64,000 nt of DNA from Adineta vaga (Eukaryota > Animalia > Rotifera), in the NCBI GenBank assembly GCA_021613535.1, contig CP075492.1, positions 20,150,001-20,214,000 on the forward strand. Direction: 5' to 3'. The position numbers and the translations under genes were made by a program. Below the pieces are notes generated by a model, which made no database searches, was not told where the DNA came from, and saw only the letters and a program-made list of their open reading frames with translations. How positions within the stretch are numbered: the stretch's first letter is position 1; the number at the start of each line of letters is the position of its first letter. This document shows positions 1 through 56,992 of this stretch, in pieces.

Positions 1-1119
1 TGTTTAAAAGACTCTAGCCAGTGTTTCGATGCTTTAAAATCTAGAACCGAATCTTTAGCAGCTTTTTGAAGGGCTCACCGTTTCAAATCGTGGTCGTGAA
101 CAGAAAAAACATTTTCGCGATCTTCTTCGAATTTGTCGTATACAAAATTATCTATAGTTTGTATTTTCTCTCGTCTTGTACCATGTTGTTCAATGTAATG
201 ACGAAAACGAGAAATACACTGCTGGCAAGGAACAGCCTTAAATTGATGCTTTGCTGATTTCCATGTATGTTTCTTTCTTCCATTTGAGTCGCAAGCATTA
301 TAGTAATCAATGACCTTTTTCATATATTCCAAGGTAAAGTTCATTTGGTTGGGCGAACTCTCAGTATTTTCAGTTTCATCGAAATCTCGGTCCATATTTT
401 CATCTTCGGAATCACTAAATGCGTCGTCGTCATCGAAATCGAGTGTTGTTTCTGATTCAACTTCAAACGATATGCATCGTTAACGCTGTCAATTATTTCT
501 AATAGGGAACGCACGATTTTCTCTTCGAATGGATTTGCTCGTAAGCTTCGACGATCCGGTTCTTCACGCTCAGTAATTCGGTTCATCAAGAGTTTCGCTA
601 TTTTTCTAGCATCACTCATAGTTTTAGTTATGTAAAAATGCAACGAACGAACAGTTTGATAAAAATACTTCTTTCGATTAACAAATATCACACGGTAGCA
701 CATGTTCTTTATATCGAACTTTTGATTATTATCATTTTCAAGACAACGTGAAAGAATGCGTATGATATGCATCTGCTGTATATCCTTTATGAGTTATCGT
801 GTTCGTAATAGTGAGTAATACGATACAAAAAGCTTCTCTGATCAACAGAAATGAAAAAAAAACTCTGAATTTTATAGTTAATTTCTAGCGATGCAACCAG
901 TTCATCATAGAATTTCCTACTTACAGCTTATTTTTGTTTTACAATATACATAGTATAGGATTAAAATTCCTTTTATCGTATGAAACTTGAAACTTGAATA
1001 TCTCAGGCTAAAAGAGACATGGGCCCAAATCCTTTTAGGGTTGTTGTTATCTATACGTCACCTCGATATGCCCAAAGTATAGACTCTAAAGCGATTAAAC
1101 ACTTCGGGTACCTCCCTCG
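1..1119 (-). mobile_element. Tc4/Tc5-like (pogo/DDE_1) transposon, copy 1, cut by the window edge
   Basis: Reverse complement of 9181-10304. The TIR ends ...GGTACCTCCCTCG at 1119, flanked by TCAG. Confidence 0.85.
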
Positions 1120-1258
1120 TCAGTCGTGTTTCTCTTTATCCATTGTAAGATGATATCATTAGATATCATCTCGTCTACCGCTTTGTCTTTCTCTCTGTAT
1201 ATAAACATGTGTGAATTTCCATCTTGTGGTCGGTCTCTTCCTTTCGTCTTCTCTCTTT

Positions 1259-1296
<38 letters not shown>

Positions 1297-1623
1297 TAAC
1301 TTGTGTTTGATTTACGAATAAAGAACCGCATCGAACATTATTTCTTTTTCTTTCCCTTCTCTCACGTTCAGGGATAAATCCCTAACCATGAGTAATACGC
1401 TGGTTTTTACAAAGTATACAACTACATTAGGTGAAGAATATATAAATACTACGACTTTCTATTTATTTAAATTCATACTAACTAAAGTGTTTTAGACATC
1501 GACAAGCTAACCATCAGAAAAGGTAATATATTTACAAAACTTTTTATGTGGAAAAAAGGAGACATTGAAGTGAAGATGAGGATGAGAAGAATATTGATTT
1601 ATTATTTTATTTAGATACTGAAA

Positions 1624-1815
1624 ATGAACTTCGTTCTTCGAAATATCATACTAATTCTATTAATTGGATCTATAGCAGTTGCAAATGCCGGTCCAGCAGC
1701 ATATTCATCATGTATGGCAGCATGCACGGCAGGTGCCTCGTTTTGGGGAGTGACACTAGGCACTGCAGGCTGTTCGAGAATATGTGCACCGCTTTTATCA
1801 GCTCCAACACCATGA
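1624..1815 (+). CDS. Small secreted cysteine peptide P1 (63 aa; signal peptide + GPAAY..CX3C-X15-CX3C..LLSAPTP), copy 1
   Basis: Hydrophobic 22-aa leader ending ANA. TATA-like TATATAAATA ~1439, putative 5'UTR intron 1523-1614 (GT..AG), AATAAA ~1918. Paralogous to P2. Confidence 0.88.
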   Translation: MNFVLRNIILILLIGSIAVANAGPAAYSSCMAACTAGASFWGVTLGTAGCSRICAPLLSAPTP

Positions 1816-2245
1816 TGACTTTTTGGTAACTCAGACAATACTTTCAATATATCTTTATATAAAAGATTAATCGAGAAGAAGAACACATGTTGTTTTAAGA
1901 TTTTTATTTATTTGTTTAATAAATCACGAAATGTATATTGGAATTTACTGGTATTTAAAAATGAATATGCAAAATCACAACAGTAAAGACAGGAGGATAG
2001 ATGAAAATATGAAAATATCAGACGAAACTTAAAGAAAAACATAGTCAATTCATCTTCTGATGCTGTGAGAAGAAAGTAACAAAGTTTTACAGAGATAATA
2101 GTGTGAGACAATGAAACAACACAAAACTAAATAAAAGAAGTACAACGTGGGGTGAACGTCAATGAAATATAGAGAAAAGACACATACCCACAGCTTCCTC
2201 CCTCTCCTCACACCTACACTCACACTCTCAAGTTGAGAGTGTGAG

Positions 2246-2894
2246 CAGTGTTGCCACCTCTTCTACTTTTCGGATTTTTTTATCTTTTATGTTTTCAATG
2301 AAAACTCTCAATATTTTAACCGATCTTTTTGTCAAAATAATCATTTAATACAAAGTCAGATTGTAAGATCTGATCAACTCTGGATGTTATTACTTTCTCT
2401 TACTCTATCACCAAATTTTAAAAACTCTTATGTTTTTTATTTTCATTACGTTGCGGTAATACTTATGTTGAATCTGTATTTTCACAAATGCAATATTTAG
2501 TAAATGACAAGCGGAACTGTATAACAAAAGAATTAGTGTCAGCTGAATTAAAAATATGTTTGAATGCTACTTGAAAATGTACTAATATGTACAAGTATAT
2601 ATTATCGAACCAGGATATATTGAAAGCTATTAAGGTCAGATAAAAAATATATGTTTAAGAAAAATGTTTAATAAATGCATTTATCTGTTTAATGTCGTTT
2701 TTTTGATTTTGTGCACTAGAATATAAAATATAATGCTAAACTTTCTTATTATTTTATTATAGCTGAGCTTAAACCATAGTTTGACATTAAAAAACACTTT
2801 CTCTTTTCTTCTGCTCTTTAACAATTGAAACTCTGTCATTTTCTGCTTTTTACAGATCATTTTTGCTTTTCGAGGGCAAAAGGTGGCAACACTG
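2246..2894. mobile_element. Possible hAT-like MITE between P1 and P2 (present in all four arms)
   Basis: 14-bp perfect inverted ends CAGTGTTGCCACCT / AGGTGGCAACACTG. No 8-bp TSD found. Confidence 0.5.
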
Positions 2895-3828
2895 TATTCA
2901 ACATTGAATTGATACTTTATATATTCAGTATAATAATGATGGTATTAATACTAACGAACTTCTCGATGGATTATTTTATGTTATTTTTTCTAAAAATATT
3001 AAATCAAAAAGAAAATGAACAATCATTATCGTATGTGTTAGGATGTATGTTATGTTCTTCATGTCCTTCGATCATATGGACATTTCCATGTGTTTTCTTT
3101 TCTTTTCCTTTCTTTCTTTCCCTTCTTTCTGTATGTTAACATATGTGTAGTTGGATTGTTCCTATCGTTCATGGGTTCTTTCCGCTTTTGATTTAAATAT
3201 ATATACGCTCGCTTCTCAGGAGAGGTGGATGGCGAATTAGCGAACTTTCTAATTTATGTGAACTGACATTTCGTCTCAGTTTTTATTATCTTTTATAGTT
3301 ACTTTTCATCTATGTAATCAAATTTATCACTTTATATATATATATATATATCAAGTCTTATTTAGATGTTTTAATATTCGATATTTTTCCTCTTCTATAT
3401 TTTCTTTTCCACACAGTTTTTTTTCTACACTTATTCTTTCGGCACTTTTTCTTTTAGTCTTTTTTCATCCAGTCGAAAAAAAGAGGGTCGTTTGGATGAC
3501 TGCGTTACTGGCATGTATTTTTCTTATGAAACATAAACTATTAAGTCAAATTGAGATGAAACTGTTACGCATTAATGAGCTTAAAAAGATACATCTATGC
3601 ACACAATATTGCGACTCTATGTTCAGTTGTTTTGCAAAAATTCGAATATAAAGTTGTCGGAACGTGAGTGTGTTACTAGCGGACAACCCGTGGCTTTTTG
3701 CAATTGCTTTTTATTTTAAACAAAAACCAAGAATTAAAAATCAGGATTAAAATGATTGTTAATAGAATATTTTAAAGAGAAAGCAAGCATAATAAATAAG
3801 GAATAGAATAGTTGTTATTTAAATTCAG

Positions 3829-4032
3829 TTATAGTACTGGAACAGCCAATAATGGTGAACACGCTGATGTGCATGCTGCAAGACATGCTGGGCTACCATA
3901 AAATAGCGTTGTTGATGAGCATGTGGCAGAACAGCTAATAAGACACGCCATGTAGGCTGCAGGCCCAGCATCTGAGACTAACGAAATCGATAATAGGAAA
4001 AAGATTATTATTGCAAACTTTTGTGTGAACAT
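3829..4032 (-). CDS. Small secreted cysteine peptide P2 (67 aa; signal peptide + GPAAY..CX3CX3C-X11-CX3CX3C..LLAVPVL), copy 1
   Basis: 22-aa leader ending SDA. Same GPAAY mature start as P1, with six evenly spaced Cys. Confidence 0.88.
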   Translation of the reverse strand: MFTQKFAIIIFFLLSISLVSDAGPAAYMACLISCSATCSSTTLFYGSPACLAACTSACSPLLAVPVL

Positions 4033-4519
4033 TGTTTCTAGAATTAAAATATTATTATAGAATTAAGAAAGTCAATGAATTCTATTTATCTACTTACATT
4101 GCCTTGCTGTTTCGTGTGTACGAGGCAGAAGAATGCTTCGAATGAGTGTTCGGAAGCAAAATCAACGTATTTTATACCATCATTGTTTTGTAATTTCACT
4201 ACCGTTTCGACAGAGAAAAAGGTAAAAAGGGACAAATACTTTGGTAAATTCCAGACAACAAAATCATTGTGACGACTATTAGAGTGGTCATGGGAGAGCG
4301 GAACGAGAGAGACGTGATGTTGTGAGAGAACGAGCGAGGCCCGACCGATACCTTTATTTAAAAGAAAAGAGAGGACAGATCGAACCGAACCTGAGTGGAA
4401 AACACACATGTTTATATACTCGACGGAGAGAAAGAGGGATGATATCATCCGAGATGATATCACCTTGAACAAAGACAACGAGGGAAAGATATCACCGAGA
4501 ACAAGAGAGAGAGAACACG

Positions 4520-4550
<31 letters not shown>

Positions 4551-4797
4551 TGTGTGTGTATTGGCTGTGGCTGTAACAACGACAAATCAAGTTTCGTTGG
4601 AAAGAGAGAAAAAGGTAAAAAGAGACAAATATTCTGGTAACTTCCAGTCAACACAATAATCGTGTGAGGATGAGTCAAGTTTCGTTGTAAGGAAGGAAAA
4701 AGGTAGAAAGAAAGAAATATTTAGGTAAACTCCAGCCGACACAATAATGAGCCATGTTTACCAATCGCTTATAAGCCATCCGACAGCAAAACTGTGC

Positions 4798-4835
<38 letters not shown>

Positions 4836-5741
4836 ACTACTATATGCGGCTTATCTCTCTTCATCTTTTTCTTCGACTGTAGAGAAAGAAGATGCTCATG
4901 GTTACCAAATAATAACGTCATTCTCTTTTTATCTTCTATTATCTTTGATCTATTCTCTTCCTTCCGAATCAATGAACATAGACAAACTTGTTGCAGAAAA
5001 TAGGAAATAATCACGATTTATCATATCATTCTTACTGATAAGTTGCAGTTGTTCTTGTGAGAAAAGTCTCGAGTCAACTACGGCTGGAAGTAGATTTATC
5101 AATATTAACAAATTCAAACATACTAGAACGACAATCACATTCTTATTTATTTCAAACATAGCTCAAAAACTCCTCTAAGAAATAAACATCATATACAGTA
5201 AAAAACTAGCTATGAATCGTGATCATCTTGAGTAAAGAAACTATTCATCTATTTACTTTTTATATGATTGAAAAAATAAAAATCATCATTTTCCTATTTT
5301 CTGCAACAAGTTTGTCTATGTTCATTGATTCGGAAGGAAGAGAATAGATCAAAGATAATAGAAGATAAAAAGAGAATGACGTTATTATTTGTTAACCATG
5401 AGCATCTTCTTTCTCTACAGTCGAAGAAAAAGATGAAGAGAGATAAGCCGCATATAGTAGTATATCTCTCTCTCTCTCTCTCTCTCTCTCAAGGCACAGT
5501 TTTGCTGTCGGATGGCTTATAAGCGATTGGTAAACATGGCTCATTATTGTGTCGGCTGGAGTTTACCTAAATATTTCTTTCTTTCTACCTTTTTCCTTCC
5601 TTACAACGAAACTTGACTCATCCTCACACGATTATTGTGTTGACTGGAAGTTACCAGAATATTTGTCTCTTTTTACCTTTTTTCTCTCTTTCCAACGAAA
5701 CTTGATTTGTCGTTGTTACAGCCACAGCCAATACACACACA

Positions 5742-5772
<31 letters not shown>

Positions 5773-6262
5773 CGTGTTCTCTCTCTCTTGTTCTCGGTGA
5801 TATCTTTCCCTCGTTGTCTTTGTTCAAGGTGATATCATCTCGGATGATATCATCCCTCTTTCTCTCCGTCGTCGAGTATATAAACATGTGTGTTTTCCAC
5901 TCAGGTTCGGTTCGATCTGTCCTCTCTTTTCTTTTAAATAAAGGTATCGGTCGGGCCTCGCTCGTTCTCTCACAACATCACGTCTCTCTCGTTCCGCTCT
6001 CCCATGACCACTCTAATAGTCGTCACAATGATTTTGTTGTCTGGAATTTACCAAAGTATTTGTCCCTTTTTACCTTTTTCTCTGTCGAAACGGTAGTGAA
6101 ATTACAAAACAATGATGGTATAAAATACGTTGATTTTGCTTCCGAACACTCATTCGAAGCATTCTTCTGCCTCGTACACACGAAACAGCAAGGCAATGTA
6201 AGTAGATAAATAGAATTCATTGACTTTCTTAATTCTATAATAATATTTTAATTCTAGAAACA

Positions 6263-6466
6263 ATGTTCACACAAAAGTTTGCAATAATAATCTTTTTCCT
6301 ATTATCGATTTCGTTAGTCTCAGATGCTGGGCCTGCAGCCTACATGGCGTGTCTTATTAGCTGTTCTGCCACATGCTCATCAACAACGCTATTTTATGGT
6401 AGCCCAGCATGTCTTGCAGCATGCACATCAGCGTGTTCACCATTATTGGCTGTTCCAGTACTATAA
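6263..6466 (+). CDS. Secreted cysteine peptide P2, copy 2
   Basis: Identical protein. TATAAAA ~6119 and putative 60-bp 5'UTR intron 6198-6257 (GTAAGT..TTCTAG). Confidence 0.88.
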   Translation: MFTQKFAIIIFFLLSISLVSDAGPAAYMACLISCSATCSSTTLFYGSPACLAACTSACSPLLAVPVL

Positions 6467-8480
6467 CTGAATTTAAATAACAACTATTCTATTCCTTATT
6501 TATTATGCTTGCTTTCTCTTTAAAATATTCTATTAACAATCATTTTAATCCTGATTTTTAATTCTTGGTTTTTGTTTAAAATAAAAAGCAATTGCAAAAA
6601 GCCACGGGTTGTCCGCTAGTAACACACTCACGTTCCGACAACTTTATATTCGAATTTTTGCAAAACAACTGAACATAGAGTCGCAATATTGTGTGCATAG
6701 ATGTATCTTTTTAAGCTCATTAATGCGTAACAGTTTCATCTCAATTTGACTTAATAGTTTATGTTTCATAAGAAAAATACATGCCAGTAACGCAGTCATC
6801 CAAACGACCCTCTTTTTTTCGACTGGATGAAAAAAGACTAAAAGAAAAAGTGCCGAAAGAATAAGTGTAGAAAAAAAAACTGTGTGGAAAAGAAAATATA
6901 GAAGAGGAAAAATATCGAATATTAAAACATCTAAATAAGACTTGATATATATATATATATATAAAGTGATAAATTTGATTACATAGATGAAAAGTAACTA
7001 TAAAAGATAATAAAAACTGAGACGAAATGTCAGTTCACATAAATTAGAAAGTTCGCTAATTCGCCATCCACCTCTCCTGAGAAGCGAGCGTATATATATT
7101 TAAATCAAAAGCGGAAAGAACCCATGAACGATAGGAACAATCCAACTACACATATGTTAACATACAGAAAGAAGGGAAAGAAAGAAAGGAAAAGAAAAGA
7201 AAACACATGGAAATGTCCATATGATCGAAGGACATGAAGAACATAACATACATCCTAACACATACGATAATGATTGTTCATTTTCTTTTTGATTTAATAT
7301 TTTTAGAAAAAATAACATAAAATAATCCATCGAGAAGTTCGTTAGTATTAATACCATCATTATTATACTGAATATATAAAGTATCAATTCAATGTTGAAT
7401 ACAGTGTTGCCACCTTTTGCCCTCGAAAAGCAAAAATGATCTGTAAAAAGCAGAAAATGACAGAGTTTCAATTGTTAAAGAGCAGAAGAAAAGAGAAAGT
7501 GTTTTTTAATGTCAAACTATGGTTTAAGCTCAGCTATAATAAAATAATAAGAAAGTTTAGCATTATATTTTATATTCTAGTGCACAAAATCAAAAAAACG
7601 ACATTAAACAGATAAATGCATTTATTAAACATTTTTCTTAAACATATATTTTTTATCTGACCTTAATAGCTTTCAATATATCCTGGTTCGATAATATATA
7701 CTTGTACATATTAGTACATTTTCAAGTAGCATTCAAACATATTTTTAATTCAGCTGACACTAATTCTTTTGTTATACAGTTCCGCTTGTCATTTACTAAA
7801 TATTGCATTTGTGAAAATACAGATTCAACATAAGTATTACCGCAACGTAATGAAAATAAAAAACATAAGAGTTTTTAAAATTTGGTGATAGAGTAAGAGA
7901 AAGTAATAACATCCAGAGTTGATCAGATCTTACAATCTGACTTTGTATTAAATGATTATTTTGACAAAAAGATCGGTTAAAATATTGAGAGTTTTCATTG
8001 AAAACATAAAAGATAAAAAAATCCGAAAAGTAGAAGAGGTGGCAACACTGCTCACACTCTCAACTTGAGAGTGTGAGTGTAGGTGTGAGGAGAGGGAGGA
8101 AGCTGTGGGTATGTGTCTTTTCTCTATATTTCATTGACGTTCACCCCACGTTGTACTTCTTTTATTTAGTTTTGCGTTGTTTCATTGTCTCACACTATTA
8201 TCTCTGTAAAACTTTGTTACTTTCTTCTCACAGCATCAGAAGATGAATTGACTATGTTTTTCTTTAAGTTTCGTCTGATATTTTCATATTTTCATCTATC
8301 CTCCTGTCTTTACTGTTGTGATTTTGCATATTCATTTTTAAATACCAGTAAATTCCAATATACATTTCGTGATTTATTAAACAAATAAATAAAAATCTTA
8401 AAACAACATGTGTTCTTCTTCTCGATTAATCTTTTATATAAAGATATATTGAAAGTATTGTCTGAGTTACCAAAAAGTCA

Positions 8481-8672
8481 TCATGGTGTTGGAGCTGATA
8501 AAAGCGGTGCACATATTCTCGAACAGCCTGCAGTGCCTAGTGTCACTCCCCAAAACGAGGCACCTGCCGTGCATGCTGCCATACATGATGAATATGCTGC
8601 TGGACCGGCATTTGCAACTGCTATAGATCCAATTAATAGAATTAGTATGATATTTCGAAGAACGAAGTTCAT
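8481..8672 (-). CDS. Secreted cysteine peptide P1, copy 2
   Basis: Identical translation to 1624-1815. Confidence 0.88.
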   Translation of the reverse strand: MNFVLRNIILILLIGSIAVANAGPAAYSSCMAACTAGASFWGVTLGTAGCSRICAPLLSAPTP

Positions 8673-8999
8673 TTTCAGTATCTAAATAAAATAATAAATC
8701 AATATTCTTCTCATCCTCATCTTCACTTCAATGTCTCCTTTTTTCCACATAAAAAGTTTTGTAAATATATTACCTTTTCTGATGGTTAGCTTGTCGATGT
8801 CTAAAACACTTTAGTTAGTATGAATTTAAATAAATAGAAAGTCGTAGTATTTATATATTCTTCACCTAATGTAGTTGTATACTTTGTAAAAACCAGCGTA
8901 TTACTCATGGTTAGGGATTTATCCCTGAACGTGAGAGAAGGGAAAGAAAAAGAAATAATGTTCGATGCGGTTCTTTATTCGTAAATCAAACACAAGTTA

Positions 9000-9041
<42 letters not shown>

Positions 9042-9180
9042 AAAGAGAGAAGACGAAAGGAAGAGACCGACCACAAGATGGAAATTCACACATGTTTATA
9101 TACAGAGAGAAAGACAAAGCGGTAGACGAGATGATATCTAATGATATCATCTTACAATGGATAAAGAGAAACACGACTGA

Positions 9181-11695
9181 CGAGGGAGGTACCCGAAGTG
9201 TTTAATCGCTTTAGAGTCTATACTTTGGGCATATCGAGGTGACGTATAGATAACAACAACCCTAAAAGGATTTGGGCCCATGTCTCTTTTAGCCTGAGAT
9301 ATTCAAGTTTCAAGTTTCAAGTTTCATACGAAAAGGAATTTTAATCCTATACTATGTATATTGTAAAACAAAAATAAGCTGTAAGTAGGAAATTCTATGA
9401 TGAACTGGTTGCATCGCTAGAAATTAACTATAAAATTCAGAGTTTTTTTTTCATTTCTGTTGATCAGAGAAGCTTTTTGTATCGTATTACTCACTATTAC
9501 GAACACGATAACTCATAAAGGATATACAGCAGATGCATATCATACGCATTCTTTCACGTTGTCTTGAAAATGATAATAATCAAAAGTTCGATATAAAGAA
9601 CATGTGCTACCGTGTGATATTTGTTAATCGAAAGAAGTATTTTTATCAAACTGTTCGTTCGTTGCATTTTTACATAACTAAAACTATGAGTGATGCTAGA
9701 AAAATAGCGAAACTCTTGATGAACCGAATTACTGAGCGTGAAGAACCGGATCGTCGAAGCTTACGAGCAAATCCATTCGAAGAGAAAATCGTGCGTTCCC
9801 TATTAGAAATAATTGACAGCGTTAACGATGCATATCGTTTGAAGTTGAATCAGAAACAACACTCGATTTCGATGACGACGACGCATTTAGTGATTCCGAA
9901 GATGAAAATATGGACCGAGATTTCGATGAAACTGAAAATACTGAGAGTTCGCCCAACCAAATGAACTTTACCTTGGAATATATGAAAAAGGTCATTGATT
10001 ACTATAATGCTTGCGACTCAAATGGAAGAAAGAAACATACATGGAAATCAGCAAAGCATCAATTTAAGGCTGTTCCTTGCCAGCAGTGTATTTCTCGTTT
10101 TCGTCATTACATTGAACAACATGGTACAAGACGAGAGAAAATACAAACTATAGATAATTTTGTATACGACAAATTCGAAGAAGATCGCGAAAATGTTTTC
10201 TCTGTTCACGACCACGATTTGAAACGGTGAGCCCTTCAAAAAGCTGCTAAAGATTCGGTTCTAGATTTTAAAGCATCGAAACACTGGCTAGAGTCTTTTA
10301 AACATCGTCATAATATTTGTTCGAGAAAATCTACGAAAATAATGACCCGTCATCAAATAACTGATTCTGATACTATAGACGCGTCTGCCGATTCCTTTGT
10401 AGCAAAAGTGAAACAAGAAATGAGTCATTACACACCTGAAGAAATTCTTAATACTGATCAGGCTGGCATCGAGCTAGAGATACACTCGACAAGAACTCTG
10501 TCGCATAAAGGTGAAGATGTTACTATAGCACGCGTAAAATCAAAGAATGCGACAACACATTCTTACACCATTCAACCAATAATAACTCTTGCCGGTCAAC
10601 TTCTCGGTCCTGTCTTTATTTGCTTAAGGGAACCAAAGGCAAAGGTGAGCGATAGTGAGTTAACTTTAATCTTTTCTTCTATAATATGCGAACGTTTTTT
10701 TTACTAGATATCAAAAAGAAACTATTTGATGCCCCAAACGTGGTTGTAACGTGTAGTTCTTCAGGAAAACTCACTGGCTCTTTGATAGAATATTGGCGAG
10801 ATCACGTTCTTCGCCCATTTGCTTCATCAAATTCTCTTCTAATCTCGGACTACTGGCCGGGTCAATGAGACTCAAAGATATACTCCGCTGTTCAAGGATG
10901 TAAGAGATTAGAGATACCAGCTCATACTACGTCAGGCATTCAACCACTTGATGTCTATTTTAACAGACAATGGAAGGTATTCACTCGACGTATATTCGAT
11001 CACGTTCAACTTGATGACATCGCCATCAACTTGTCTGAACGAAACAATATAGTACAATTGAATTCTGTTATTCATAATCAGGTGTCGTCGTCTCAATTTG
11101 TACCTATGATCAAGTATGCATGGTTTGCATCATGGTATGCTGATCAGGATCCAGGAAGTTTTAAGTCTGTCAATGAAGTTTGCTTCAACATTGCTGCTGA
11201 TGTTTGTCAACATTCGAGCTGTCACTCGTTATGCTTTATTCAATGCAGCCATTGTCAAAAACTACTCTGCTTCGAACATTTCTTTGAAGCTTACCACTAT
11301 CATAAATAGATATCGGCCTTTTCTAGTGTGATACCACAGATTTCTTAGAAATGACTTTTATTAAAATAGACGGTTCATCGACTACGAGGCTTCCAAGAAA
11401 ATAATTCTGATTAACAGAAATGAAAAAAAAACTCTGAATTTTATAGTTAATTTCTAGCGATGCAACCAGTTCATCATAGAATTTCCTACTTACAGCTTAT
11501 TTTTGTTTTACAATATACATAGTATAGGATTAAAATTCCTTTTATCGTATGAAACTTGAAACTTGAAACTTGAATATCTCAGGCTAAAAGAGACATGGGC
11601 CCAAATCCTTTTAGGGTTGTTGTTATCTATACGTCACCTCGATATGCCCAAAGTATAGACTCTAAAGCGATTAAACACTTCGGGTACCTCCCTCG
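9181..11695 (+). mobile_element. Tc4/Tc5-like (pogo/DDE_1) DNA transposon, full length, ~285-bp TIRs, pseudogenised transposase (~9686-11309)
   Basis: TIRs CGAGGGAGGTACCCGAAG... at 9181-~9467 and ~11406-11695. CENP-B-like HTH (FKASKHWLESFKHRH), NTDQ, TTHSYT and IQPLDVYF motifs, Cys-rich tail. In-frame stops at 10228 and 10866. Flanks are C-TGA and TAA-G. Confidence 0.85.
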
Positions 11696-13959: not shown

Positions 13960-14008
<49 letters not shown>

Positions 14009-41749: not shown

Positions 41750-41792
<43 letters not shown>

Positions 41793-45117: not shown

Positions 45118-46125
45118 TTAAACAGTCTACTACAATTGAAGTTACTATGTTTGCCTTTTTCTTGATGAAAAACTAGCTTGAAATTGAAAGACAAATTCCG
45201 AGAAACGTCACATTATTGAGTGTTATTTCGTCTCTTCTCATAAAAAACCGCGCATTGATGAACAACAAATGGGTCCAAATGTGGTCATCGCCTTTTCACT
45301 ACTGATGATACCCGAATCTCTGCATCCTACCATCGCCACTACTGCTTCATGTTCTGAGGATCAAACAATATTCTATTCTATTTCTTATACATCGTCTTTA
45401 TCTCGCCAATTCCGTTGATTTCAACGAGAATTTCGAAGCTACATCTATTCCAAATGACATTGATACATCGGGCACTACAGAAGTTTTCTCGCTCGCCACA
45501 ACGAAACTAGTAAATTCTCTCGTATAAGTCTTATTTTGACTGAAGAGTGTCGCAAGATGCTCTTTGAGTTCTTTGTTAATCGAACTATCGAAATATCCTC
45601 AGTCTTATTATAATTCTTTCAGAAAAGGGTCAGCGAATCTAAAGGATGACCGCTAGTTGTTTTTACAACCTTACCTTATCCACACTAGATTACAGTAATA
45701 CCAAATAATAACAATACGCTGTTTGTCAGTATATATATATATATATATATATATGAAAGACATGTCGAAACGAAAGGGAAAGAACCACAGTAAATAGTCC
45801 TAGTCTCTCTCTCTTTGAGTTAATCACCTGATGGCCTTGCTCATGACTAATGTTATGTTAACGAATGGGAAGAATCTATCTCCAAAAAGGAAATTACCTA
45901 TTGTGATTCGAACAAGGCCAATATCACCACTGTCTTTTTCCAGATAACTTATTGTTATAGCGTAACTCACTTATGTTGGTTATTTCTTTCCTTTATTCTA
46001 CTAGCGAATAAAAGAAGCGTATGGCGTGTTTGGAAAATAAACCATTCAACCCGTCATGATATATGGTTCTTTCCATTCTCTCCATGGTCACATATACATA
46101 TATGTCATAGGCAAAATTAAACTTA

Positions 46126-48633
46126 CGAGGGAGGTACCGCGAAGTGTTTAATCGCTTTAGAGTCTATACTTTGGGCATATCGAGGTGACGTATAGATAAC
46201 AACAACCCTAAAAGGATTTGGGCCCATGTCTCTTTTAGCCTGAGATATTCAAGTTTCAAGTTTCATACGATAAAAGGAATTTTAATCCTATACTATGTAT
46301 ATTGTAAAACAAAAATAAGCTGTAAGTAGGAAATTCTATGATGAACTGGTTGCATCGCTAGAAATTAACTATAAAATTCAGAGTTTTTTTTTCATTTCTG
46401 TTAATCAGAATTATTTTCTTGGAAGCCTCGTAGTCGATGAACCGTCTATTTTAATAAAAGTCATTTCTAAGAAATCTGTGGTATCACACTAGAAAAGGCC
46501 GATATCTATTTATGATAGTGGTAAGCTTCAAAGAAATGTTCGAAGCAGAGTAGTTTTTGACAATGGCTGCATTGAATAAAGCATAACGAGTGACAGCTCG
46601 AATGTTGACAAACATCAGCAGCAATGTTGAAGCAAACTTCATTGACAGACTTAAAACTTCCTGGATCCTGATCAGCATACCATGATGCAAACCATGCATA
46701 CTTGATCATAGGTACAAATTGAGACGACGACACCTGATTATGAATAACAGAATTCAATTGTACTATATTGTTTCGTTCAGACAAGTTGATGGCGATGTCA
46801 TCAAGTTGAACGTGATCGAATATACGTCGAGTGAATACCTTCCATTGTCTGTTAAAATAGACATCAAGTGGTTGAATGCCTGACGTAGTATGAGCTGGTA
46901 TCTCTAATCTCTTACATCCTTGAACAGCGGAGTATATCTTTGAGTCTCATTGACCCGGCCAGTAGTCCGAGATTAGAAGAGAATTTGATGAAGCAAATGG
47001 GCGAAGAACGTGATCTCGCCAATATTCTATCAAAGAGCCAGTGAGTTTTCCTGAAGAACTACACGTTACAACCACGTTTGGGGCATCAAATAGTTTCTTT
47101 TTGATATCTAGTAAAAACAACGTTCGCATATTATAGAAGAAAAGATTAAAGTTAACTCACTATCGCTCACCTTTGCCTTTGGTTCCCTTAAGCAAATAAA
47201 GACAGGACCGAGAAGTTGACCGGCAAGAGTTATTATTGGTTGAATGGTGTAAGAATGTGTTGTCGCATTCTTTGATTTTACGCGTGCTATAGTAACATCT
47301 TCACCTTTATGCGACAGAGTTCTTGTCGAGTGTATCTCTAGCTCGATGCCAGCCTGATCAGTATTAAGAATTTCTTCAGGTGTGTAATGACTCATTTCTT
47401 GTTTCACTTTTGCTACAAAGGAATCGGCAGACGCGTCTATAGTATCAGAATCAGTTATTTGATGACGGGTCATTATTTTCGTAGATTTTCTCGAACAAAT
47501 ATTATGACGATGTTTAAAAGACTCTAGCCAGTGTTTCGATGCTTTAAAATCTAGAACCGAATCTTTAGCAGCTTTTTGAAGGGCTCACCGTTTCAAATCG
47601 TGGTCGTGAACAGAGAAAACATTTTCGCGATCTTCTTCGAATTTGTCGTATACAAAATTATCTATAGTTTGTATTTTCTCTCGTCTTGTACCATGTTGTT
47701 CAATGTAATGACGAAAACGAGAAATACACTGCTGGCAAGAACAGCCTTAAATTGATGCTTTGCTGATTTCCATGTATGTTTCTTTCTTCCATTTGAGTCG
47801 CAAGCATTATAGTAATCAATGACCTTTTTCATATATTCCAAGGTAAAGTTCATTTGGTTGGGCGAACTCTCAGTATTTTCAGTTTCATCGAAATCTCGGT
47901 CCATATTTTCATCTTCGGAATCACTAAATGCGTCGTCGTCATCGAAATCGAGTGTTGTTTCTGATTCAACTTCAAACGATATGCATCGTTAACGCTGTCA
48001 ATTATTTCTAATAGGGAACGCACGATTTTCTCTTCGAATGGATTTGCTCGTAAGCTTCGACGATCCGGTTCTTCACGCTCAGTAATTCGGTTCATCAAGA
48101 GTTTCGCTATTTTCTAGCATCACTCATAGTTTTAGTTATGTAAAAATGCAACGAACGAACAGTTTGATAAAAATACTTCTTTCGATTAACAAATATCACA
48201 CGGTAGCACATGTTCTTTATATCGAACTTTTGATTATTATCATTTTCAAGACAACGTGAAAGAATGCGTATGATATGCATCTGCTGTATATCCTTTATGA
48301 GTTATCGTGTTCGTAATAGTGAGTAATACGATACAAAAGCTTCTCTGATCAACAGAAATGAAAAAAAAAACTCTGAATTTTATAGTTAATTTCTAGCGAT
48401 GCAACCAGTTCATCATAGAATTTCCTACTTACAGCTTATTTTTGTTTTACAATATACATAGTATAGGATTAAATTCCTTTTATCGTATGAAACTTGAAAC
48501 TTGAAACTTGAATATCTCAGGCTAAAAGAGACATGGGCCCAAATCCTTTTAGGGTTGTTGTTATCTATACGTCACCTCGATATGCCCAAAGTATAGACTC
48601 TAAAGCGATTAAACACTTCGGGTACCTCCCTCG
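46126..48633 (-). mobile_element. Tc4/Tc5-like transposon, copy 3
   Basis: Reverse complement of 9181-11695 with the same stops and the same flanks. Confidence 0.85.
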
Positions 48634-48775
48634 TCAGTCGTGTTTCTCTTTATCCATTGTAAGATGATATCATTAGATATCATCTCGTCTACCGCTTTGT
48701 CTTTCTCTCTGTATATAAACATGTGTGAATTTCCATCTTGTGGTCGGTCTCTTCCTTTCGTCTTCTCTCTTTTCT

Positions 48776-48806
<31 letters not shown>

Positions 48807-49137
48807 GATGTAACTTGTGTTTGATTTACGAATAAAGAACCGCATCGAACATTATTTCTTTTTCTTTCCCTTCTCTCACGTTCAGGGATAAATCCCTAAC
48901 CATGAGTAATACGCTGGTTTTTACAAAGTATACAACTACATTAGGTGAAGAATATATAAATACTACGACTTTCTATTTATTTAAATTCATACTAACTAAA
49001 GTGTTTTAGACATCGACAAGCTAACCATCAGAAAAGGTAATATATTTACAAAACTTTTTATGTGGAAAAAAGGAGACATTGAAGTGAAGATGAGGATGAG
49101 AAGAATATTGATTTATTATTTTATTTAGATACTGAAA

Positions 49138-49329
49138 ATGAACTTCGTTCTTCGAAATATCATACTAATTCTATTAATTGGATCTATAGCAGTTGCAAAT
49201 GCCGGTCCAGCAGCATATTCATCATGTATGGCAGCATGCACGGCAGGTGCCTCGTTTTGGGGAGTGACACTAGGCACTGCAGGCTGTTCGAGAATATGTG
49301 CACCGCTTTTATCAGCTCCAACACCATGA
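49138..49329 (+). CDS. Secreted cysteine peptide P1, copy 3
   Basis: Identical translation to 1624-1815. Confidence 0.88.
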   Translation: MNFVLRNIILILLIGSIAVANAGPAAYSSCMAACTAGASFWGVTLGTAGCSRICAPLLSAPTP

Positions 49330-51344
49330 TGACTTTTTTGGTAACTCAGACAATACTTTCAATATATCTTTTATATAAAAGATTAATCGAGAAGAAGAAC
49401 ACATGTTGTTTTAAGATTTTTATTTATTTGTTTAATAAATCACGAAATGTATATTGGAATTTACTGGTATTTTAAAAATGAATATGCAAAATCACAACAG
49501 TAAAGACAGGAGGATAGATGAAAATATGAAAATATCAGACGAAACTTAAAGAAAAACATAGTCAATTCATCTTCTGATGCTGTGAGAAGAAAGTAACAAA
49601 GTTTTACAGAGATAATAGTGTGAGACAATGAAACAACGCAAAACTAAATAAAAGAAGTACAACGTGGGGTGAACGTCAATGAAATATAGAGAAAAGACAC
49701 ATACCCACAGCTTCCTCCCTCTCCTCACACCTACACTCACACTCTCAAGTTGAGAGTGTGAGCAGTGTTGCCACCTCTTCTACTTTTCGGATTTTTTTTA
49801 TCTTTTATGTTTTCAATGAAAACTCTCAATATTTTAACCGATCTTTTTGTCAAAATAATCATTTAATACAAAGTCAGATTGTAAGATCTGATCAACTCTG
49901 GATGTTATTACTTTCTCTTACTCTATCACCAAATTTTAAAAACTCTTATGTTTTTTATTTTCATTACGTTGCGGTAATACTTATGTTGAATCTGTATTTT
50001 CACAAATGCAATATTTAGTAAATGACAAGCGGAACTGTATAACAAAAGAATTAGTGTCAGCTGAATTAAAAATATGTTTGAATGCTACTTGAAAATGTAC
50101 TAATATGTACAAGTATATATTATCGAACCAGGATATATTGAAAGCTATTAAGGTCAGATAAAAAATATATGTTTAAGAAAAATGTTTAATAAATGCATTT
50201 ATCTGTTTAATGTCGTTTTTTTGATTTTGTGCACTAGAATATAAAATATAATGCTAAACTTTCTTATATTTTATTATAGCTGAGCTTAAACCATAGTTTG
50301 ACATTAAAAAACACTTTCTCTTTTCTTCTGCTCTTTAACAATTGAAACTCTGTCATTTTCTGCTTTTTACAGATCATTTTTGCTTTTCGAGGGCAAAAGG
50401 TGGCAACACTGTATTCAACATTGAATTGATACTTTATATATTCAGTATAATAATGATGGTATTAATACTAACGAACTTCTCGATGGATTATTTTATGTTA
50501 TTTTTTCTAAAAATATTAAATCAAAAAGAAAATGAACAATCATTATCGTATGTGTTAGGATGTATGTTATGTTCTTCATGTCCTTCGATCATATGGACAT
50601 TTCCATGTGTTTTCTTTTCTTTTCCTTTCTTTCTTTCCCTTCTTTCTGTATGTTAACATATGTGTAGTTGGATTGTTCCTATCGTTCATGGGTTCTTTCC
50701 GCTTTTGATTTAAATATATATACGCTCGCTTCTCAGGAGAGGTGGATGGCGAATTAGCGAACTTTCTAATTTATGTGAACTGACATTTCGTCTCAGTTTT
50801 TATTATCTTTTATAGTTACTTTTCATCTATGTAATCAAATTTATCACTTTATTATATATATATATATCAAGTCTTATTTAGATGTTTTAATATTCGATAT
50901 TTTTCCTCTTCTATATTTTCTTTTCCACACAGTTTTTTTTCTACACTTATTCTTTCGGCACTTTTTCTTTTAGTCTTTTTTCATCCAGTCGAAAAAAAGA
51001 GGGTCGTTTGGATGACTGCGTTACTGGCATGTATTTTTCTTATGAAACATAAACTATTAAGTCAAATTGAGATGAAACTGTTACGCATTAATGAGCTTAA
51101 AAAGATACATCTATGCACACAATATTGCGACTCTATGTTCAGTTGTTTTGCAAAAATTCGAATATAAAGTTGTCGGAACGTGAGTGTGTTACTAGCGGAC
51201 AACCCGTGGCTTTTTGCAATTGCTTTTTATTTTAAACAAAAACCAAGAATTAAAAATCAGGATTAAAATGATTGTTAATAGAATATTTTAAAGAGAAAGC
51301 AAGCATAATAAATAAGGAATAGAATAGTTGTTATTTAAATTCAG

Positions 51345-51548
51345 TTATAGTACTGGAACAGCCAATAATGGTGAACACGCTGATGTGCATGCTGCAAGAC
51401 ATGCTGGGCTACCATAAAATAGCGTTGTTGATGAGCATGTGGCAGAACAGCTAATAAGACACGCCATGTAGGCTGCAGGCCCAGCATCTGAGACTAACGA
51501 AATCGATAATAGGAAAAAGATTATTATTGCAAACTTTTGTGTGAACAT
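51345..51548 (-). CDS. Secreted cysteine peptide P2, copy 3
   Basis: Identical translation to 3829-4032. Confidence 0.88.
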   Translation of the reverse strand: MFTQKFAIIIFFLLSISLVSDAGPAAYMACLISCSATCSSTTLFYGSPACLAACTSACSPLLAVPVL

Positions 51549-52968
51549 TGTTTCTAGAATTAAAATATTATTATAGAATTAAGAAAGTCAATGAATTCTA
51601 TTTATCTACTTACATTGCCTTGCTGTTTCGTGTGTACGAGGCAGAAGAATGCTTCGAATGAGTGTTCGGAAGCAAAATCAACGTATTTTATACCATCATT
51701 GTTTTGTAATTTCACTACCGTTTCGACAGAGAAAAAGGTAAAAAGGGACAAATACTTTGGTAAATTCCAGACAACAAAATCATTGTGACGACTATTAGAG
51801 TGGTCATGGGAGAGCGGAACGAGAGAGACGTGATGTTGTGAGAGAACGAGCGAGGCCCGACCGATACCTTTATTTAAAAGAAAAGAGAGGACAGATCGAA
51901 CCGAACCTGAGTGGAAAACACACATGTTTATATACTCGACGGAGAGAAAGAGGGATGATATCATCCGAGATGATATCACCTTGAACAAAGACAACGAGGG
52001 AAAGATATCACCGAGAACAAGAGAGAGAGAACACGACAAGAGAGAGAGAACACGAGAGAGAGAGAGAGAGAGAGAGAGTGTGTGTGTATTGGCTGTGGCT
52101 GTAACAACGACAAATCAAGTTTCGTTGGAAAGAGAGAAAAAGGTAAAAAGAGACAAATATTCTGGTAACTTCCAGTCAACACAATAATCGTGTGAGGATG
52201 AGTCAAGTTTCGTTGTAAGGAAGGAAAAAGGTAGAAAGAAAGAAATATTTAGGTAAACTCCAGCCGACACAATAATGAGCCATGTTTACCAATCGCTTAT
52301 AAGCCATCCGACAGCAAAACTGTGCCTTGAGAGAGAGAATATACTACTATATGCGGCTTATCTCTCTTCATCTTTTTCTTCGACTGTAGAGAAAGAAGAT
52401 GCTCATGGTTACCAAATAATAACGTCATTCTCTTTTTATCTTCTATTATCTTTGATCTATTCTCTTCCTTCCGAATCAATGAACATAGACAAACTTGTTG
52501 CAGAAAATAGGAAAATGATGATTTTTATTTTTTCAATCATATAAAAAGTAAATAGATGAATAGTTTCTTTACTCAAGATGATCACGATTCATAGCTAGTT
52601 TTTTACTGTATATGATGTTTATTTCTTAGAGGAGTTTTTGAGCTATGTTTGAAATAAATAAGAATGTGATTGTCGTTCTAGTATGTTTGAATTTGTTAAT
52701 ATTGATAAATCTACTTCCAGCCGTAGTTGACTCGAGACTTTTCTCACAAGAACAACTGCAACTTATCAGTAAGAATGATATGATAAATCGTGATTATTTC
52801 CTATTTTCTGCAACAAGTTTGTCTATGTTCATTGATTCGGAAGGAAGAGAATAGATCAAAGATAATAGAAGATAAAAAGAGAATGACGTTATTATTTGGT
52901 AACCATGAGCATCTTCTTTCTCTACAGTCGAAGAAAAAGATGAAGAGAGATAAGCCGCATATAGTAGT

Positions 52969-53007
<39 letters not shown>

Positions 53008-53770
53008 GCACAGTTTTGCTGTCGGATGGCTTATAAGCGATTGGTAAACATGGCTCATTATTGTGTCGGCTGGAGTTTACCTAAATATTTCTTTCTTTCT
53101 ACCTTTTTCCTTCCTTACAACGAAACTTGACTCATCCTCACACGATTATTGTGTTGACTGGAAGTTACCAGAATATTTGTCTCTTTTTACCTTTTTCTCT
53201 CTTTCCAACGAAACTTGATTTGTCGTTGTTACAGCCACAGCCAATACACACACACTCTCTCTCTCTCTCTCTCTCTCTCTTGTCGTGTTCTCTCTCTCTT
53301 GTTCTCGGTGATATCTTTCCCTCGTTGTCTTTGTTCAAGGTGATATCATCTCGGATGATATCATCCCTCTTTCTCTCCGTCGAGTATATAAACATGTGTG
53401 TTTTCCACTCAGGTTCGGTTCGATCTGTCCTCTCTTTTCTTTTAAATAAAGGTATCGGTCGGGCCTCGCTCGTTCTCTCACAACATCACGTCTCTCTCGT
53501 TCCGCTCTCCCATGACCACTCTAATAGTCGTCACAATGATTTTGTTGTCTGGAATTTACCAAAGTATTTGTCCCTTTTTACCTTTTTCTCTGTCGAAACG
53601 GTAGTGAAATTACAAAACAATGATGGTATAAAATACGTTGATTTTGCTTCCGAACACTCATTCGAAGCATTCTTCTGCCTCGTACACACGAAACAGCAAG
53701 GCAATGTAAGTAGATAAATAGAATTCATTGACTTTCTTAATTCTATAATAATATTTTAATTCTAGAAACA

Positions 53771-53974
53771 ATGTTCACACAAAAGTTTGCAATAATAATC
53801 TTTTTCCTATTATCGATTTCGTTAGTCTCAGATGCTGGGCCTGCAGCCTACATGGCGTGTCTTATTAGCTGTTCTGCCACATGCTCATCAACAACGCTAT
53901 TTTATGGTAGCCCAGCATGTCTTGCAGCATGCACATCAGCGTGTTCACCATTATTGGCTGTTCCAGTACTATAA
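53771..53974 (+). CDS. Secreted cysteine peptide P2, copy 4
   Basis: Identical translation to 3829-4032. Confidence 0.88.
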   Translation: MFTQKFAIIIFFLLSISLVSDAGPAAYMACLISCSATCSSTTLFYGSPACLAACTSACSPLLAVPVL

Positions 53975-55986
53975 CTGAATTTAAATAACAACTATTCTAT
54001 TCCTTATTTATTATGCTTGCTTTCTCTTTAAAATATTCTATTAACAATCATTTTAATCCTGATTTTTAATTCTTGGTTTTTGTTTAAAATAAAAAGCAAT
54101 TGCAAAAAGCCACGGGTTGTCCGCTAGTAACACACTCACGTTCCGACAACTTTATATTCGAATTTTTGCAAAACAACTGAACATAGAGTCGCAATATTGT
54201 GTGCATAGATGTATCTTTTTAAGCTCATTAATGCGTAACAGTTTCATCTCAATTTGACTTAATAGTTTATGTTTCATAAGAAAAATACATGCCAGTAAAC
54301 AGTCATCCAAACGACCCTCTTTTTTTCGACTGGATGAAAAAAGACTAAAAGAAAAAGTGCCGAAAGAATAAGTGTAGAAAAAAAACTGTGTGGAAAAGAA
54401 AATATAGAAGAGGAAAAATATCGAATATTAAAACATCTAAATAAGACTTGATATATATATATATATATAAAGTGATAAATTTGATTACATAGATGAAAAG
54501 TAACTATAAAAGATAATAAAAACTGAGACGAAATGTCAGTTCACATAAATTAGAAAGTTCGCTAATTCGCCATCCACCTCTCCTGAGAAGCGAGCGTATA
54601 TATATTTAAATCAAAAGCGGAAAGAACCCATGAACGATAGGAACAATCCAACTACACATATGTTAACATACAGAAAGAAGGGAAAGAAAGAAAGGAAAAG
54701 AAAAGAAAACACATGGAAATGTCCATATGATCGAAGGACATGAAGAACATAACATACATCCTAACACATACGATAATGATTGTTCATTTTCTTTTTGATT
54801 TAATATTTTTAGAAAAAATAACATAAAATAATCCATCGAGAAGTTCGTTAGTATTAATACCATCATTATTATACTGAATATATAAAGTATCAATTCAATG
54901 TTGAATACAGTGTTGCCACCTTTTGCCCTCGAAAAGCAAAAATGATCTGTAAAAAGCAGAAAATGACAGAGTTTCAATTGTTAAAGAGCAGAAGAAAAGA
55001 GAAAGTGTTTTTTAATGTCAAACTATGGTTTAAGCTCAGCTATAATAAAATAATAAGAAAGTTTAGCATTATATTTTATATTCTAGTGCACAAAATCAAA
55101 AAAACGACATTAAACAGATAAATGCATTTATTAAACATTTTTCTTAAACATATATTTTTTATCTGACCTTAATAGCTTTCAATATATCCTGGTTCGATAA
55201 TATATACTTGTACATATTAGTACATTTTCAAGTAGCATTCAAACATATTTTTAATTCAGCTGACACTAATTCTTTTGTTATACAGTTCCGCTTGTCATTT
55301 ACTAAATATTGCATTTGTGAAAATACAGATTCAACATAAGTATTACCGCAACGTAATGAAAATAAAAAACATAAGAGTTTTTAAAATTTGGTGATAGAGT
55401 AAGAGAAAGTAATAACATCCAGAGTTGATCAGATCTTACAATCTGACTTTGTATTAAATGATTATTTTGACAAAAAGATCGGTTAAAATATTGAGAGTTT
55501 TCATTGAAAACATAAAAGATAAAAAAATCCGAAAAGTAGAAGAGGTGGCAACACTGCTCACACTCTCAACTTGAGAGTGTGAGTGTAGGTGTGAGGAGAG
55601 GGAGGAAGCTGTGGGTATGTGTCTTTTCTCTATATTTCATTGACGTTCACCCCACGTTGTACTTCTTTTATTTAGTTTTGCGTTGTTTCATTGTCTCACA
55701 CTATTATCTCTGTAAAACTTTGTTACTTTCTTCTCACAGCATCAGAAGATGAATTGACTATGTTTTTCTTTAAGTTTCGTCTGATATTTTCATATTTTCA
55801 TCTATCCTCCTGTCTTTACTGTTGTGATTTTGCATATTCATTTTTAAATACCAGTAAATTCCAATATACATTTCGTGATTTATTAAACAAATAAATAAAA
55901 ATCTTAAAACAACATGTGTTCTTCTTCTCGATTAATCTTTTATATAAAGATATATTGAAAGTATTGTCTGAGTTACCAAAAAGTCA

Positions 55987-56178
55987 TCATGGTGTTGGAG
56001 CTGATAAAAGCGGTGCACATATTCTCGAACAGCCTGCAGTGCCTAGTGTCACTCCCCAAAACGAGGCACCTGCCGTGCATGCTGCCATACATGATGAATA
56101 TGCTGCTGGACCGGCATTTGCAACTGCTATAGATCCAATTAATAGAATTAGTATGATATTTCGAAGAACGAAGTTCAT
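55987..56178 (-). CDS. Secreted cysteine peptide P1, copy 4
   Basis: Identical translation to 1624-1815. Confidence 0.88.
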   Translation of the reverse strand: MNFVLRNIILILLIGSIAVANAGPAAYSSCMAACTAGASFWGVTLGTAGCSRICAPLLSAPTP

Positions 56179-56755
56179 TTTCAGTATCTAAATAAAATAA
56201 TAAATCAATATTCTTCTCATCCTCATCTTCACTTCAATGTCTCCTTTTTTCCACATAAAAAGTTTTGTAAATATATTACCTTTTCTGATGGTTAGCTTGT
56301 CGATGTCTAAAACACTTTAGTTAGTATGAATTTAAATAAATAGAAAGTCGTAGTATTTATATATTCTTCACCTAATGTAGTTGTATACTTTGTAAAAACC
56401 AGCGTATTACTCATGGTTAGGGATTTATCCCTGAACGTGAGAGAAGGGAAAGAAAAAGAAATAATGTTCGATGCGGTTCTTTATTCGTAAATCAAACACA
56501 AGTTACATCGAGAGAGAGAGAGAGAGAGAAAGAAAAGAGAGAAGACGAAAGGAAGAGACCGACCACAAGATGGAAATTCACACATGTTTATATACAGAGA
56601 GAAAGACAAAGCGGTAGACGAGATGATATCTAATGATATCATCTTACAATGGATAAAGAGAAACACGACTGAGAGAAGAAAAAGATAGAATAGTCCAAGG
56701 GTTTCGTCCCGTAACACTCATTAAGAATAAATTGTTCCCAACAATGTATCATTAA

Positions 56756-56961: not shown

Positions 56962-56992
<31 letters not shown>

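Follow-up and report, generated by a model that had tools for sequence, protein, structure and literature searches.

When a fork stalls or a break occurs nearby, a short inverted repeat that encloses a small loop can turn into the centre of a giant palindrome, in which the loop may have either orientation. Examples are the ribosomal DNA of Tetrahymena, amplification in yeast and in Chinese hamster ovary (CHO) cells, and the 'nearby inverted repeats' of Schizosaccharomyces pombe. The ampliconic palindromes of primate sex chromosomes combine long arms of at least 99.9% identity with short spacers and nesting (P1 arms), undergo conversion, and carry small amplified gene families. Here we analyze a 64,000-nucleotide stretch of the bdelloid rotifer Adineta vaga (hereafter the window; positions 20,150,001-20,214,000 of a 20,354,754-bp scaffold), which proves to be part of a complex of nested palindromes and tandem units. 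On balance, this complex is probably a real, recent, and lineage-specific amplification of ~163 kb in the right subtelomere, in which broken ends went repeatedly through fold-back repair templated by inverted repeats, or through inverted break-induced replication, the resulting repeats underwent unequal exchange, and telomerase healed the final break.

In human fold-back inverted duplications, spacers of 766-70,466 bp are bounded by repeats at their edges, the rearranged end is capped by a telomere or a translocation, and microhomology of 1-5 bp is found (PMC3907307). The A. vaga complex resembles the human inverted duplications with terminal deletion (Hermetz et al., 2014, PMC3907307) in having inverted arms, a single-copy spacer, and homology at the spacer edges, provided there by Alu/LINE pairs and here by two inverted repeats designated a'/a and e1/e2. 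Shared features also include a distal cap, formed by a de novo telomere or other DNA, and additional complexity from further cycles. The complex offers a clear case of a known type of break-repair rearrangement. In contrast to the human cases, it comprises several nested rounds that reuse two hinges, as well as direct tandem units, and its shortest spacer (282 bp) falls below the 766-bp minimum of that series. It is also fixed in the germline reference of an asexual animal and was later buried by terminal sequence.

The short-inverted-repeat systems differ in another respect. At this single locus, known from sequence alone, 'unfired' units (a' S A W, defined below) lie beside the 'fired' palindromes 1 and 2. 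The resemblance to primate sex-chromosome palindromes extends to arms of multiple to tens of kilobases, short spacers, nesting, conversion, and amplified small gene families. However, those palindromes are much older and conserved between species, whereas the A. vaga complex is subtelomeric, has no counterpart elsewhere in the genome, and carries break-healing scars at both ends.

Palindromes described in the 2013 draft of the A. vaga genome (AV13) were later withdrawn, as they were allelic regions scaffolded head to head (PMC8494291). The present arms are instead paralogous and 0.05-0.5% diverged, meet at a natural inverted-repeat centre without a gap, and bear private transposon and telomere marks. 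A haplotype-scaffolding artefact of the AV13 type does not fit this divergence, which is below the mean allelic value of 1.7% (PMC8494291), the lack of Ns, or the occurrence of the centre repeat five times.

Layout of the complex

The genome assembly consists of six scaffolds with a total of 100.8 Mb, which we infer to be the haploid chromosome-level AV20 (Simion et al., 2021). AV20 is a collapsed haploid assembly made with NextDenovo on Oxford Nanopore Technologies (ONT) reads, followed by purge_dups, HyPo polishing, and Hi-C scaffolding with instaGRAAL (PMC8494291). The right end of the scaffold is 140-205 kb away from the window. Self-comparison was repeated with 70 kb added to the left and 80 kb to the right of the window, giving 214 kb examined, in which no Ns occur. 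Negative coordinates extend the window numbering leftwards, and those above 64000 extend it rightwards. In this numbering the complex occupies -36493 to +126958, which is 78-241 kb short of the right scaffold end and hence subtelomeric, the region where most chromosomal rearrangements of A. vaga are found (PMC8494291).

The complex is built from a few modules. K (10.4 kb) consists of A, a peptide unit; T, a Tc4/Tc5-like element; and B, which encodes a phosphatase. U corresponds to the central 24 kb of the first-pass annotation minus the last 1.9 kb, and g1 is that 1.9 kb. W is a 9.4-kb segment with two inverted IIGP-like GTPase genes, S is the 282-bp spacer, and a' is a short inverted stub of A. 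The order is tailK-U-g1-K'-S-K-g1'-U'-K'(+piggyBac)-S'-[A W]-[a' S A W]x2-a' S-K-U, ending in (TGTGGG)n. The segments, including open reading frames (ORFs), are as follows.

Up to -36494: left flank, then a solo terminal repeat, at the left junction.
-36493 to -5482: copy L1, with the last 0.8 kb of A, then T, B, U, and g1.
-5482 to 5007: K' (arm 1).
1 to 1124, minus strand: part of T', the Tc4/Tc5-like element of arm 1, which extends left to -1395.
1125 to 5007, minus strand: A' of arm 1, the inverted peptide unit and innermost left arm of palindrome 1.
5008 to 5289, plus strand: spacer S1, 282 bp, the centre of palindrome 1 and one of five identical copies, all at this locus.
5290 to 15758, plus strand: K (arm 2).
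5290 to 9175, plus strand: A of arm 2, with two small secreted-peptide ORFs.
9181 to 11695, plus strand: T, Tc4/Tc5-like element with 293-bp terminal inverted repeats.
11701 to 15758, plus strand: B, with a dual-specificity phosphatase ORF at 12936-13412; its last 1.2 kb, 14530-15758, is segment 'e'.
15759 to 17639, minus strand: g1', the continuation of U, with the 3' part of a piggyBac-like transposase gene.
17639 to 39987, minus strand: U' of copy L2, 22 kb, transposon-rich (three piggyBac-like elements, Helitron/PIF1).
15759 to 52514: copy L2 as a whole (g1', U', K'), carrying a private 2,059-bp piggyBac.
39988 to 43058, minus strand: distal part of B' in arm 3, of the outer-K type.
43059 to 45117, plus strand: arm-specific piggyBac insertion.
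45118 to 48638, minus strand: remaining B' and T' (46121-48638) of arm 3.
48639 to 52514, minus strand: A' of arm 3, the left arm of palindrome 2.
52515 to 52796, minus strand: spacer S', the only flipped one among the five.
52797 to 56672, plus strand: A of arm 4, which ends at an intact CTGAG and is followed by W instead of T.
56676 to 64000 and on to 66063, plus strand: W, the first of three copies, part of the tandem unit [a' S A W].
58620-59267 (minus strand) and 63196-63912 (plus strand): IIGP-like GTPase ORFs in W.
66325 and 80049: positions of S in the two following [a' S A W] units.
93591 to 126958: a' S K U, copy L3, with U at 104593-126958.
From 126958: (TGTGGG)n, the right junction.

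As assembled, S is present in five copies, A in seven, T and B in five each, U and W in three each, and g1 in two, in addition to one A tail and three 262-bp stubs a'. A genome search placed every close copy of A, W, S, and g1 at this locus, and T has one extra copy, 93% identical, on a different scaffold.

The first-pass annotation had recognized two palindromes with 282-bp spacers nested in inverted outer arms of ~14.7 kb, and all of these elements were reproduced by self-comparison. Within the window, palindrome 1 pairs 1-5007 with 10304-5290 at 99.5% identity around the 282-bp spacer at 5008-5289. Its arms are really 13.85 kb long at 99.6% identity (-8827 to 5007 against 19115 to 5290) and extend further, to ~41 kb at ~98.4%. 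Palindrome 2 pairs 48630-52514 with 56675-52797, with a single mismatch and a 282-bp spacer at 52515-52796. The outer inverted arms match 1116-12696 with 56675-45118, and 12693-15758 with 43058-39988. Over the entire complex, inverted arms measure 3.9, 13.85, ~33, and ~41 kb at 98.4-99.8% identity. They are separated by S (282 bp), by U and g1 (24 kb, K to K'), or by the tandem array (41 kb, L2' to L3). As multi-kilobase matches of at least 99% identity are involved, a chance origin is impossible.

A continuation beyond the left edge of the window had been suspected, and the complex does reach -36493. It also extends to the right, where three further 282-bp spacers lie in tandem units of 13.7-13.8 kb. 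The proposal that one duplication is insufficient holds as well, since the layout needs more than one event. On the other hand, the central 24 kb had been treated as unique. The flank-extended self-comparison rules this out, as U is present in triplicate.

Inverted repeats at the turnarounds

Every S lies within an inverted repeat, a'/a, of 240-262 bp. The stub a' is the inverted first 240-262 bp of A, identical over ~240 bp and with mismatches confined to the outer 20 bp. The repeat is also present in the tandem units, which lack a large palindrome, and the two large palindromes are centred on exactly the a'-S-a module. Folding prediction gives this module a 260-bp stem with -324 kcal/mol and z = -45. 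Four of the five spacers share one orientation, and that of palindrome 2 is reversed. Exchange in a' or a between direct and inverted modules would produce such a flip.

A second inverted repeat surrounds U. Throughout A and T and over most of B, no difference separates the inner K copies (arms 1 and 2) from the outer ones (L1, arm 3, and L3). Nearly all fixed differences between the two classes (38 of 40) fall in 14530-15752, adjoining U/g1, where divergence is ~3%. This edge divergence indicates that an older inverted repeat borders the 24-kb 'spacer': U and g1 are bordered by a 1.2-kb inverted repeat (e1/e2) of 97% identity. Segment e (14530-15758) has only five close copies, those at this locus. 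The suggestion of arm-to-arm conversion gains support from the same pattern: the K copies agree in their core but diverge by ~3% over the final 1.2 kb, where members of one copy class have the same type.

Transposable elements

T is 2.5 kb long, with terminal inverted repeats of 293 bp and a Transp_Tc5_C domain (Pfam, E = 1e-9). Its ORF is fragmented, and no DDE domain match was found in Pfam. A CTNAG target with duplication of TNA is of the Tc4 type. The flanks of T read C-TGA[T]TAA-G and are mismatched, and the junction of A with W (56668-56676) is an intact CTGAG, the empty target of T. The mismatched flanks are identical in all five copies, which places T on an old recombinant junction inherited by all K copies. 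The observation that T occurs in the leftmost arm and is missing from arm 4 was correct, and arm 4 ends exactly where T starts in the other arms. Its interpretation as an arm-specific transposon difference fails, because T is fixed in unit K and arm 4 is an A-W unit. The shared flanks in five of five copies and the intact CTGAG between A and W rule out T as an arm-specific insertion. Tc4 consensus sequences were known only from nematodes and arthropods until tardigrades were added, and an ecdysozoan origin has been hypothesized (10.1101/2023.11.06.565293). A Tc4/Tc5-type copy in a rotifer would widen the range of Tc4 beyond that preprint.

The real arm-specific transposition is the 2,059-bp piggyBac in arm 3 (43059-45117). 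The element is flanked by a TTAA duplication, has perfect terminal repeats (CCCTTTGAGTCCC) and CCCTTT...AAAGGG ends, and contains an intact transposase ORF of 463 aa (DDE_Tnp_1_7, E = 5e-77). In arm 2 and L3, the TTAA site is empty with matching flanks, and the insertion is absent from the alignments of arm 1 and L1. Because this private insertion has its TTAA duplication in arm 3 while the site is empty elsewhere, the copies are physically distinct. Three essentially identical copies of the element exist genome-wide, the others at C5:1763479-1765536 and C1:1653448-1655505, which suggests that the family may be currently or very recently active in A. vaga.

The two junctions

At the right end, copy L3 stops within a gene. 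In L2, the piggyBac-like transposase gene passes uninterrupted from U into g1, and its L1 copy is noisier. In L3, the gene breaks off after ...GGCAGGTG and is joined to (TGTGGG)n at a GGTG microhomology (126958), so that the sequence following ...GGCAGGTG is TCGGAC in the intact gene and GGTGTGGG... in L3. Irregular TGTGGG repeats make up this tract over ~215 bp, and its G-strand is oriented 5' to 3' towards the scaffold end. (TGTGGG)n is the bdelloid telomere repeat (PMC8494291, PMC7943196), and arrays of it are frequent in the genome, in which no perfect five-repeat (30 nt) runs of TTAGGC or TTAGGG were found. These repeats, along with the piggyBac and IIGP genes, speak against a nematode source, to which the Tc4/Tc5-like element might have pointed. 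L3 is without g1 and all that lies beyond it. Genome-wide, g1 is confined to the arms of palindrome 1, with none distal to L3; an insertion of the telomere tract that split U is ruled out by this restriction to the two inner arms. The features of the right end are the hallmark of telomerase healing at a chromosome break.

Past the tract lies a reverse-transcriptase-like ORF that resembles rotifer reverse-transcriptase fragments, and the distal ORFs gave no Pfam match. Sequence from window position 127171, after the tract, recurs ~215 bp downstream and contains CTGATGAG...CGAAAC on the minus strand. A search for the hammerhead-like motif of Penelope-type retroelements returned no Rfam match at the gathering score or at E<=1. 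The label Athena was not adopted for this sequence, as a hammerhead resemblance seen by eye was unconfirmed by Rfam.

At the left end, the A tail begins one base past the inner end of a solo 290-bp terminal repeat (-36782 to -36494). The repeat belongs to a family of DNA transposons or miniature inverted-repeat transposable elements (MITEs) with terminal inverted repeats of ~290 bp, with copies at C6:128843-129490 and C6:146686-148316. Other copies of the family are inverted pairs, and one C6 copy consists of two repeats with 70 bp between them and is likely to form a strong hairpin. The solo repeat at the left breakpoint looks as if an element had been broken at its loop. No partner of this repeat was found in the 214 kb examined, so the complex is not the inside of one giant transposon with this repeat at its ends.

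Origin of the complex

According to the favoured explanation, a broken end with a or A sequence would have used an inverted copy for priming, from which K-U would have been copied outward again. The result would be inverted duplications with S (282 bp), U and g1 (24 kb), or the tandem array (41 kb) as spacers. Homology in A/a would have primed the formation of L3 as an inverted copy of L2', separated from it by the 41-kb tandem array as spacer, before L3 was cut short and received its cap. The giant palindrome centred on S1 and the K-U-K' unit would stem from earlier events of the same type. A fusion or deletion may have formed the left junction, the tandem units may derive from unequal exchange, and the spacer may have been flipped by exchange between arms. 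Gene conversion would keep the arms identical except at their edges. Telomerase would have capped the last broken end, distal to which ~78 kb of terminal sequence with retroelements would later have accumulated. Such a history agrees with an animal group in which desiccation causes double-strand breaks that are repaired to an uncommon degree (PMC7943196).

The three copies of U have different apparent ages. L2 and L3 (104593-126958) are 99.76% identical, and L2 and L1 (-29196 to -7338) ~98.4%. L3 has no private substitutions among the three, L2 has 12, and L1 is an outlier. Relative to L3, gap events number 189 in L1 and 25 in L2, and insertions in L1 are about as many as deletions. L1 (-36493 to -8827; scaffold 20,113,507-20,141,173) carries ~0.6% small indels relative to its paralogues, with an abrupt onset at -8827. 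Many of its 'substitutions' are indel shifts, and a few dense tracts have a real appearance. The consensus of L1 is poor, and the stretch looks like one that escaped polishing or was built from few reads.

Several points weigh against the proposed series of fold-back repairs. The order and orientation of near-identical blocks of 10-47 kb rest on a single ONT-based assembly. A single consistent fold-back series needs extras, namely a deletion or fusion at the left junction and expansion of the tandem unit. L1 has 5-8 times more 1-2-bp indels than L2 (each against L3), about half of them outside homopolymers. The L1 and L2 arms are more diverged than those of L2 and L3, which a simple palindrome-first history does not predict. 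Lastly, the seven A copies offer no informative variants by which the events could be ordered.

An assembly artefact, in whole or in part, is the rival that survives best, although we consider it unlikely. The blocks and junctions would be real, but the assembler would have walked the graph of K, S, and U too often or joined structurally different haplotypes, and the copy number of the real haploid locus would be lower, such as a single Q = K-U-K' together with the tandem array. The authors of AV20, a collapsed assembly, report a concentration of uncollapsed haplotigs in subtelomeres and regard the earlier palindromes of A. vaga as artefacts (PMC8494291). The raw-read-like error profile of L1, with its sharp quality step at -8827, points the same way, as does the difference of just ~20 substitutions in 12 kb between arms 1 and 2, several of which are indel-shift noise. 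Moreover, polishing with short reads has no power to validate a palindrome centred on a'-S-a, which adds no junction k-mers of its own. Yet the arm divergence of 0.05-0.5% is far under the allelic level, the 214 kb hold no Ns, and the breakpoints are biological (the fivefold inverted repeat, the TTAA insertion, the telomere tract, and the terminal-repeat edge) and not arbitrary. A false haplotype join at palindrome 2 would have had only 262 bp of shared sequence, and each simpler haplotype pair that was constructed still requires large palindromes. Each long copy also has a private structural mark: the piggyBac insertion in L2, the telomere truncation in L3, and the left junction in L1.

It is more doubtful still that the complex is a long-standing cluster of palindromic and tandem genes, homogenized by conversion and reshaped only by homologous exchange (flip-flop inversion and unequal crossing-over), with no fold-back and with the telomere tract as an unrelated later truncation. 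An identical core with a diverged edge, seen both in K and in the stub a', is the classic signature of a conversion-maintained inverted repeat. The one reversed spacer is a product expected of arm-to-arm exchange, the direct 13.8-kb units fit unequal exchange, and the seven A copies are essentially identical, differing only by singletons and microsatellite lengths. Exchange alone, however, cannot make the first inverted copies, the joint between the A tail and the solo repeat, or the telomere-capped L3, and the lack of a related locus elsewhere in a paleotetraploid genome argues for a young, lineage-specific origin.

Classical breakage-fusion-bridge of a monocentric chromosome, in which sisters fuse after telomere loss and the bridge breaks in cycles until a telomere is acquired, would account for K units that alternate head-to-head and tail-to-tail, for copy numbers that climb towards the turnaround at S (S 5, A 7, T/B 5, U 3, g1 2), and for the telomere-capped final end, but is very improbable, because the turnarounds are two reused sequences with pre-existing inverted repeats and not blunt sister fusions, the scaffold has no palindrome at its end, the giant palindrome has a right arm that exceeds its template arm in length (by hand parse), three direct tandem units separate the last inverted pair, and the map needs at least two events of another kind, suffix inversion plus truncation alone being insufficient. 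Of the amplification processes offered by the first-pass annotation, fold-back is supported, as such a process at a chromosome end fits the inverted homology at both turnarounds and the telomere-capped distal copy, whereas classical breakage-fusion-bridge alone fails on the reused turnarounds, the longer right arm, and the direct tandem units.

Gene content

The genes of the region include those for piggyBac, Helitron/PIF1, IIGP-like GTPase, and ART+WWE proteins, and a flanking ORF matches the A. vaga hypothetical protein I4U23_016937. The two divergently placed peptide ORFs of A, at 6263-6463 (plus strand) and 8484-8681 (minus strand), each encode a signal peptide and ~45 residues with the pattern GPAAY...C-rich...PLLxxP. 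Both are repeated in all seven A copies and are co-amplified with the IIGP-like GTPase genes of W. The peptides matched no Pfam family and no record in an exact-protein look-up. The ORF in B is a DSPc phosphatase (Pfam), for which a homologue search gave a best hit of 67%. An ART+WWE (NAD:arginine ADP-ribosyltransferase) gene is located at -49639 to -48470, within the unique flank on the left. Its family is large and rotifer-expanded, with many matches in Adineta, Rotaria, and Didymodactylos.

Significance

The ~160 kb of reference sequence that is repeated 3-7-fold affects read mapping, calls of heterozygosity and loss of heterozygosity, and gene-family counts. If all assembled copies hold the ORFs read in one unit, the complex contains 14 peptide, 6 IIGP-like GTPase, and 5 phosphatase genes. 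It also shows recent piggyBac activity.

As a base-level record of repair outcomes, the locus brings together at one chromosome end an inverted-repeat-templated duplication, telomere healing within a gene, and a fusion at the edge of a transposon hairpin. A. vaga is studied for its survival of massive DNA breakage and has a disputed genome structure. With the earlier palindromes withdrawn, this locus becomes a test case for whether the species has palindromes at all.

A more speculative extension, to which we give a low probability, is that a'-S-a, with its 260-bp stem and 282-nt loop, serves as a reusable fold-back hinge that has repeatedly amplified a defence-type cassette at a bdelloid chromosome end. 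The cassette may comprise the secreted Cys-rich peptides, the IIGP-like GTPases, and the phosphatase. Stable inheritance of giant, perfect palindromes would follow from a tolerance of bdelloid chromosomes for intermediates that in other organisms are unstable or kill the cell. Were this true, the locus would be a natural record of desiccation-induced breaks creating gene amplification without sex.

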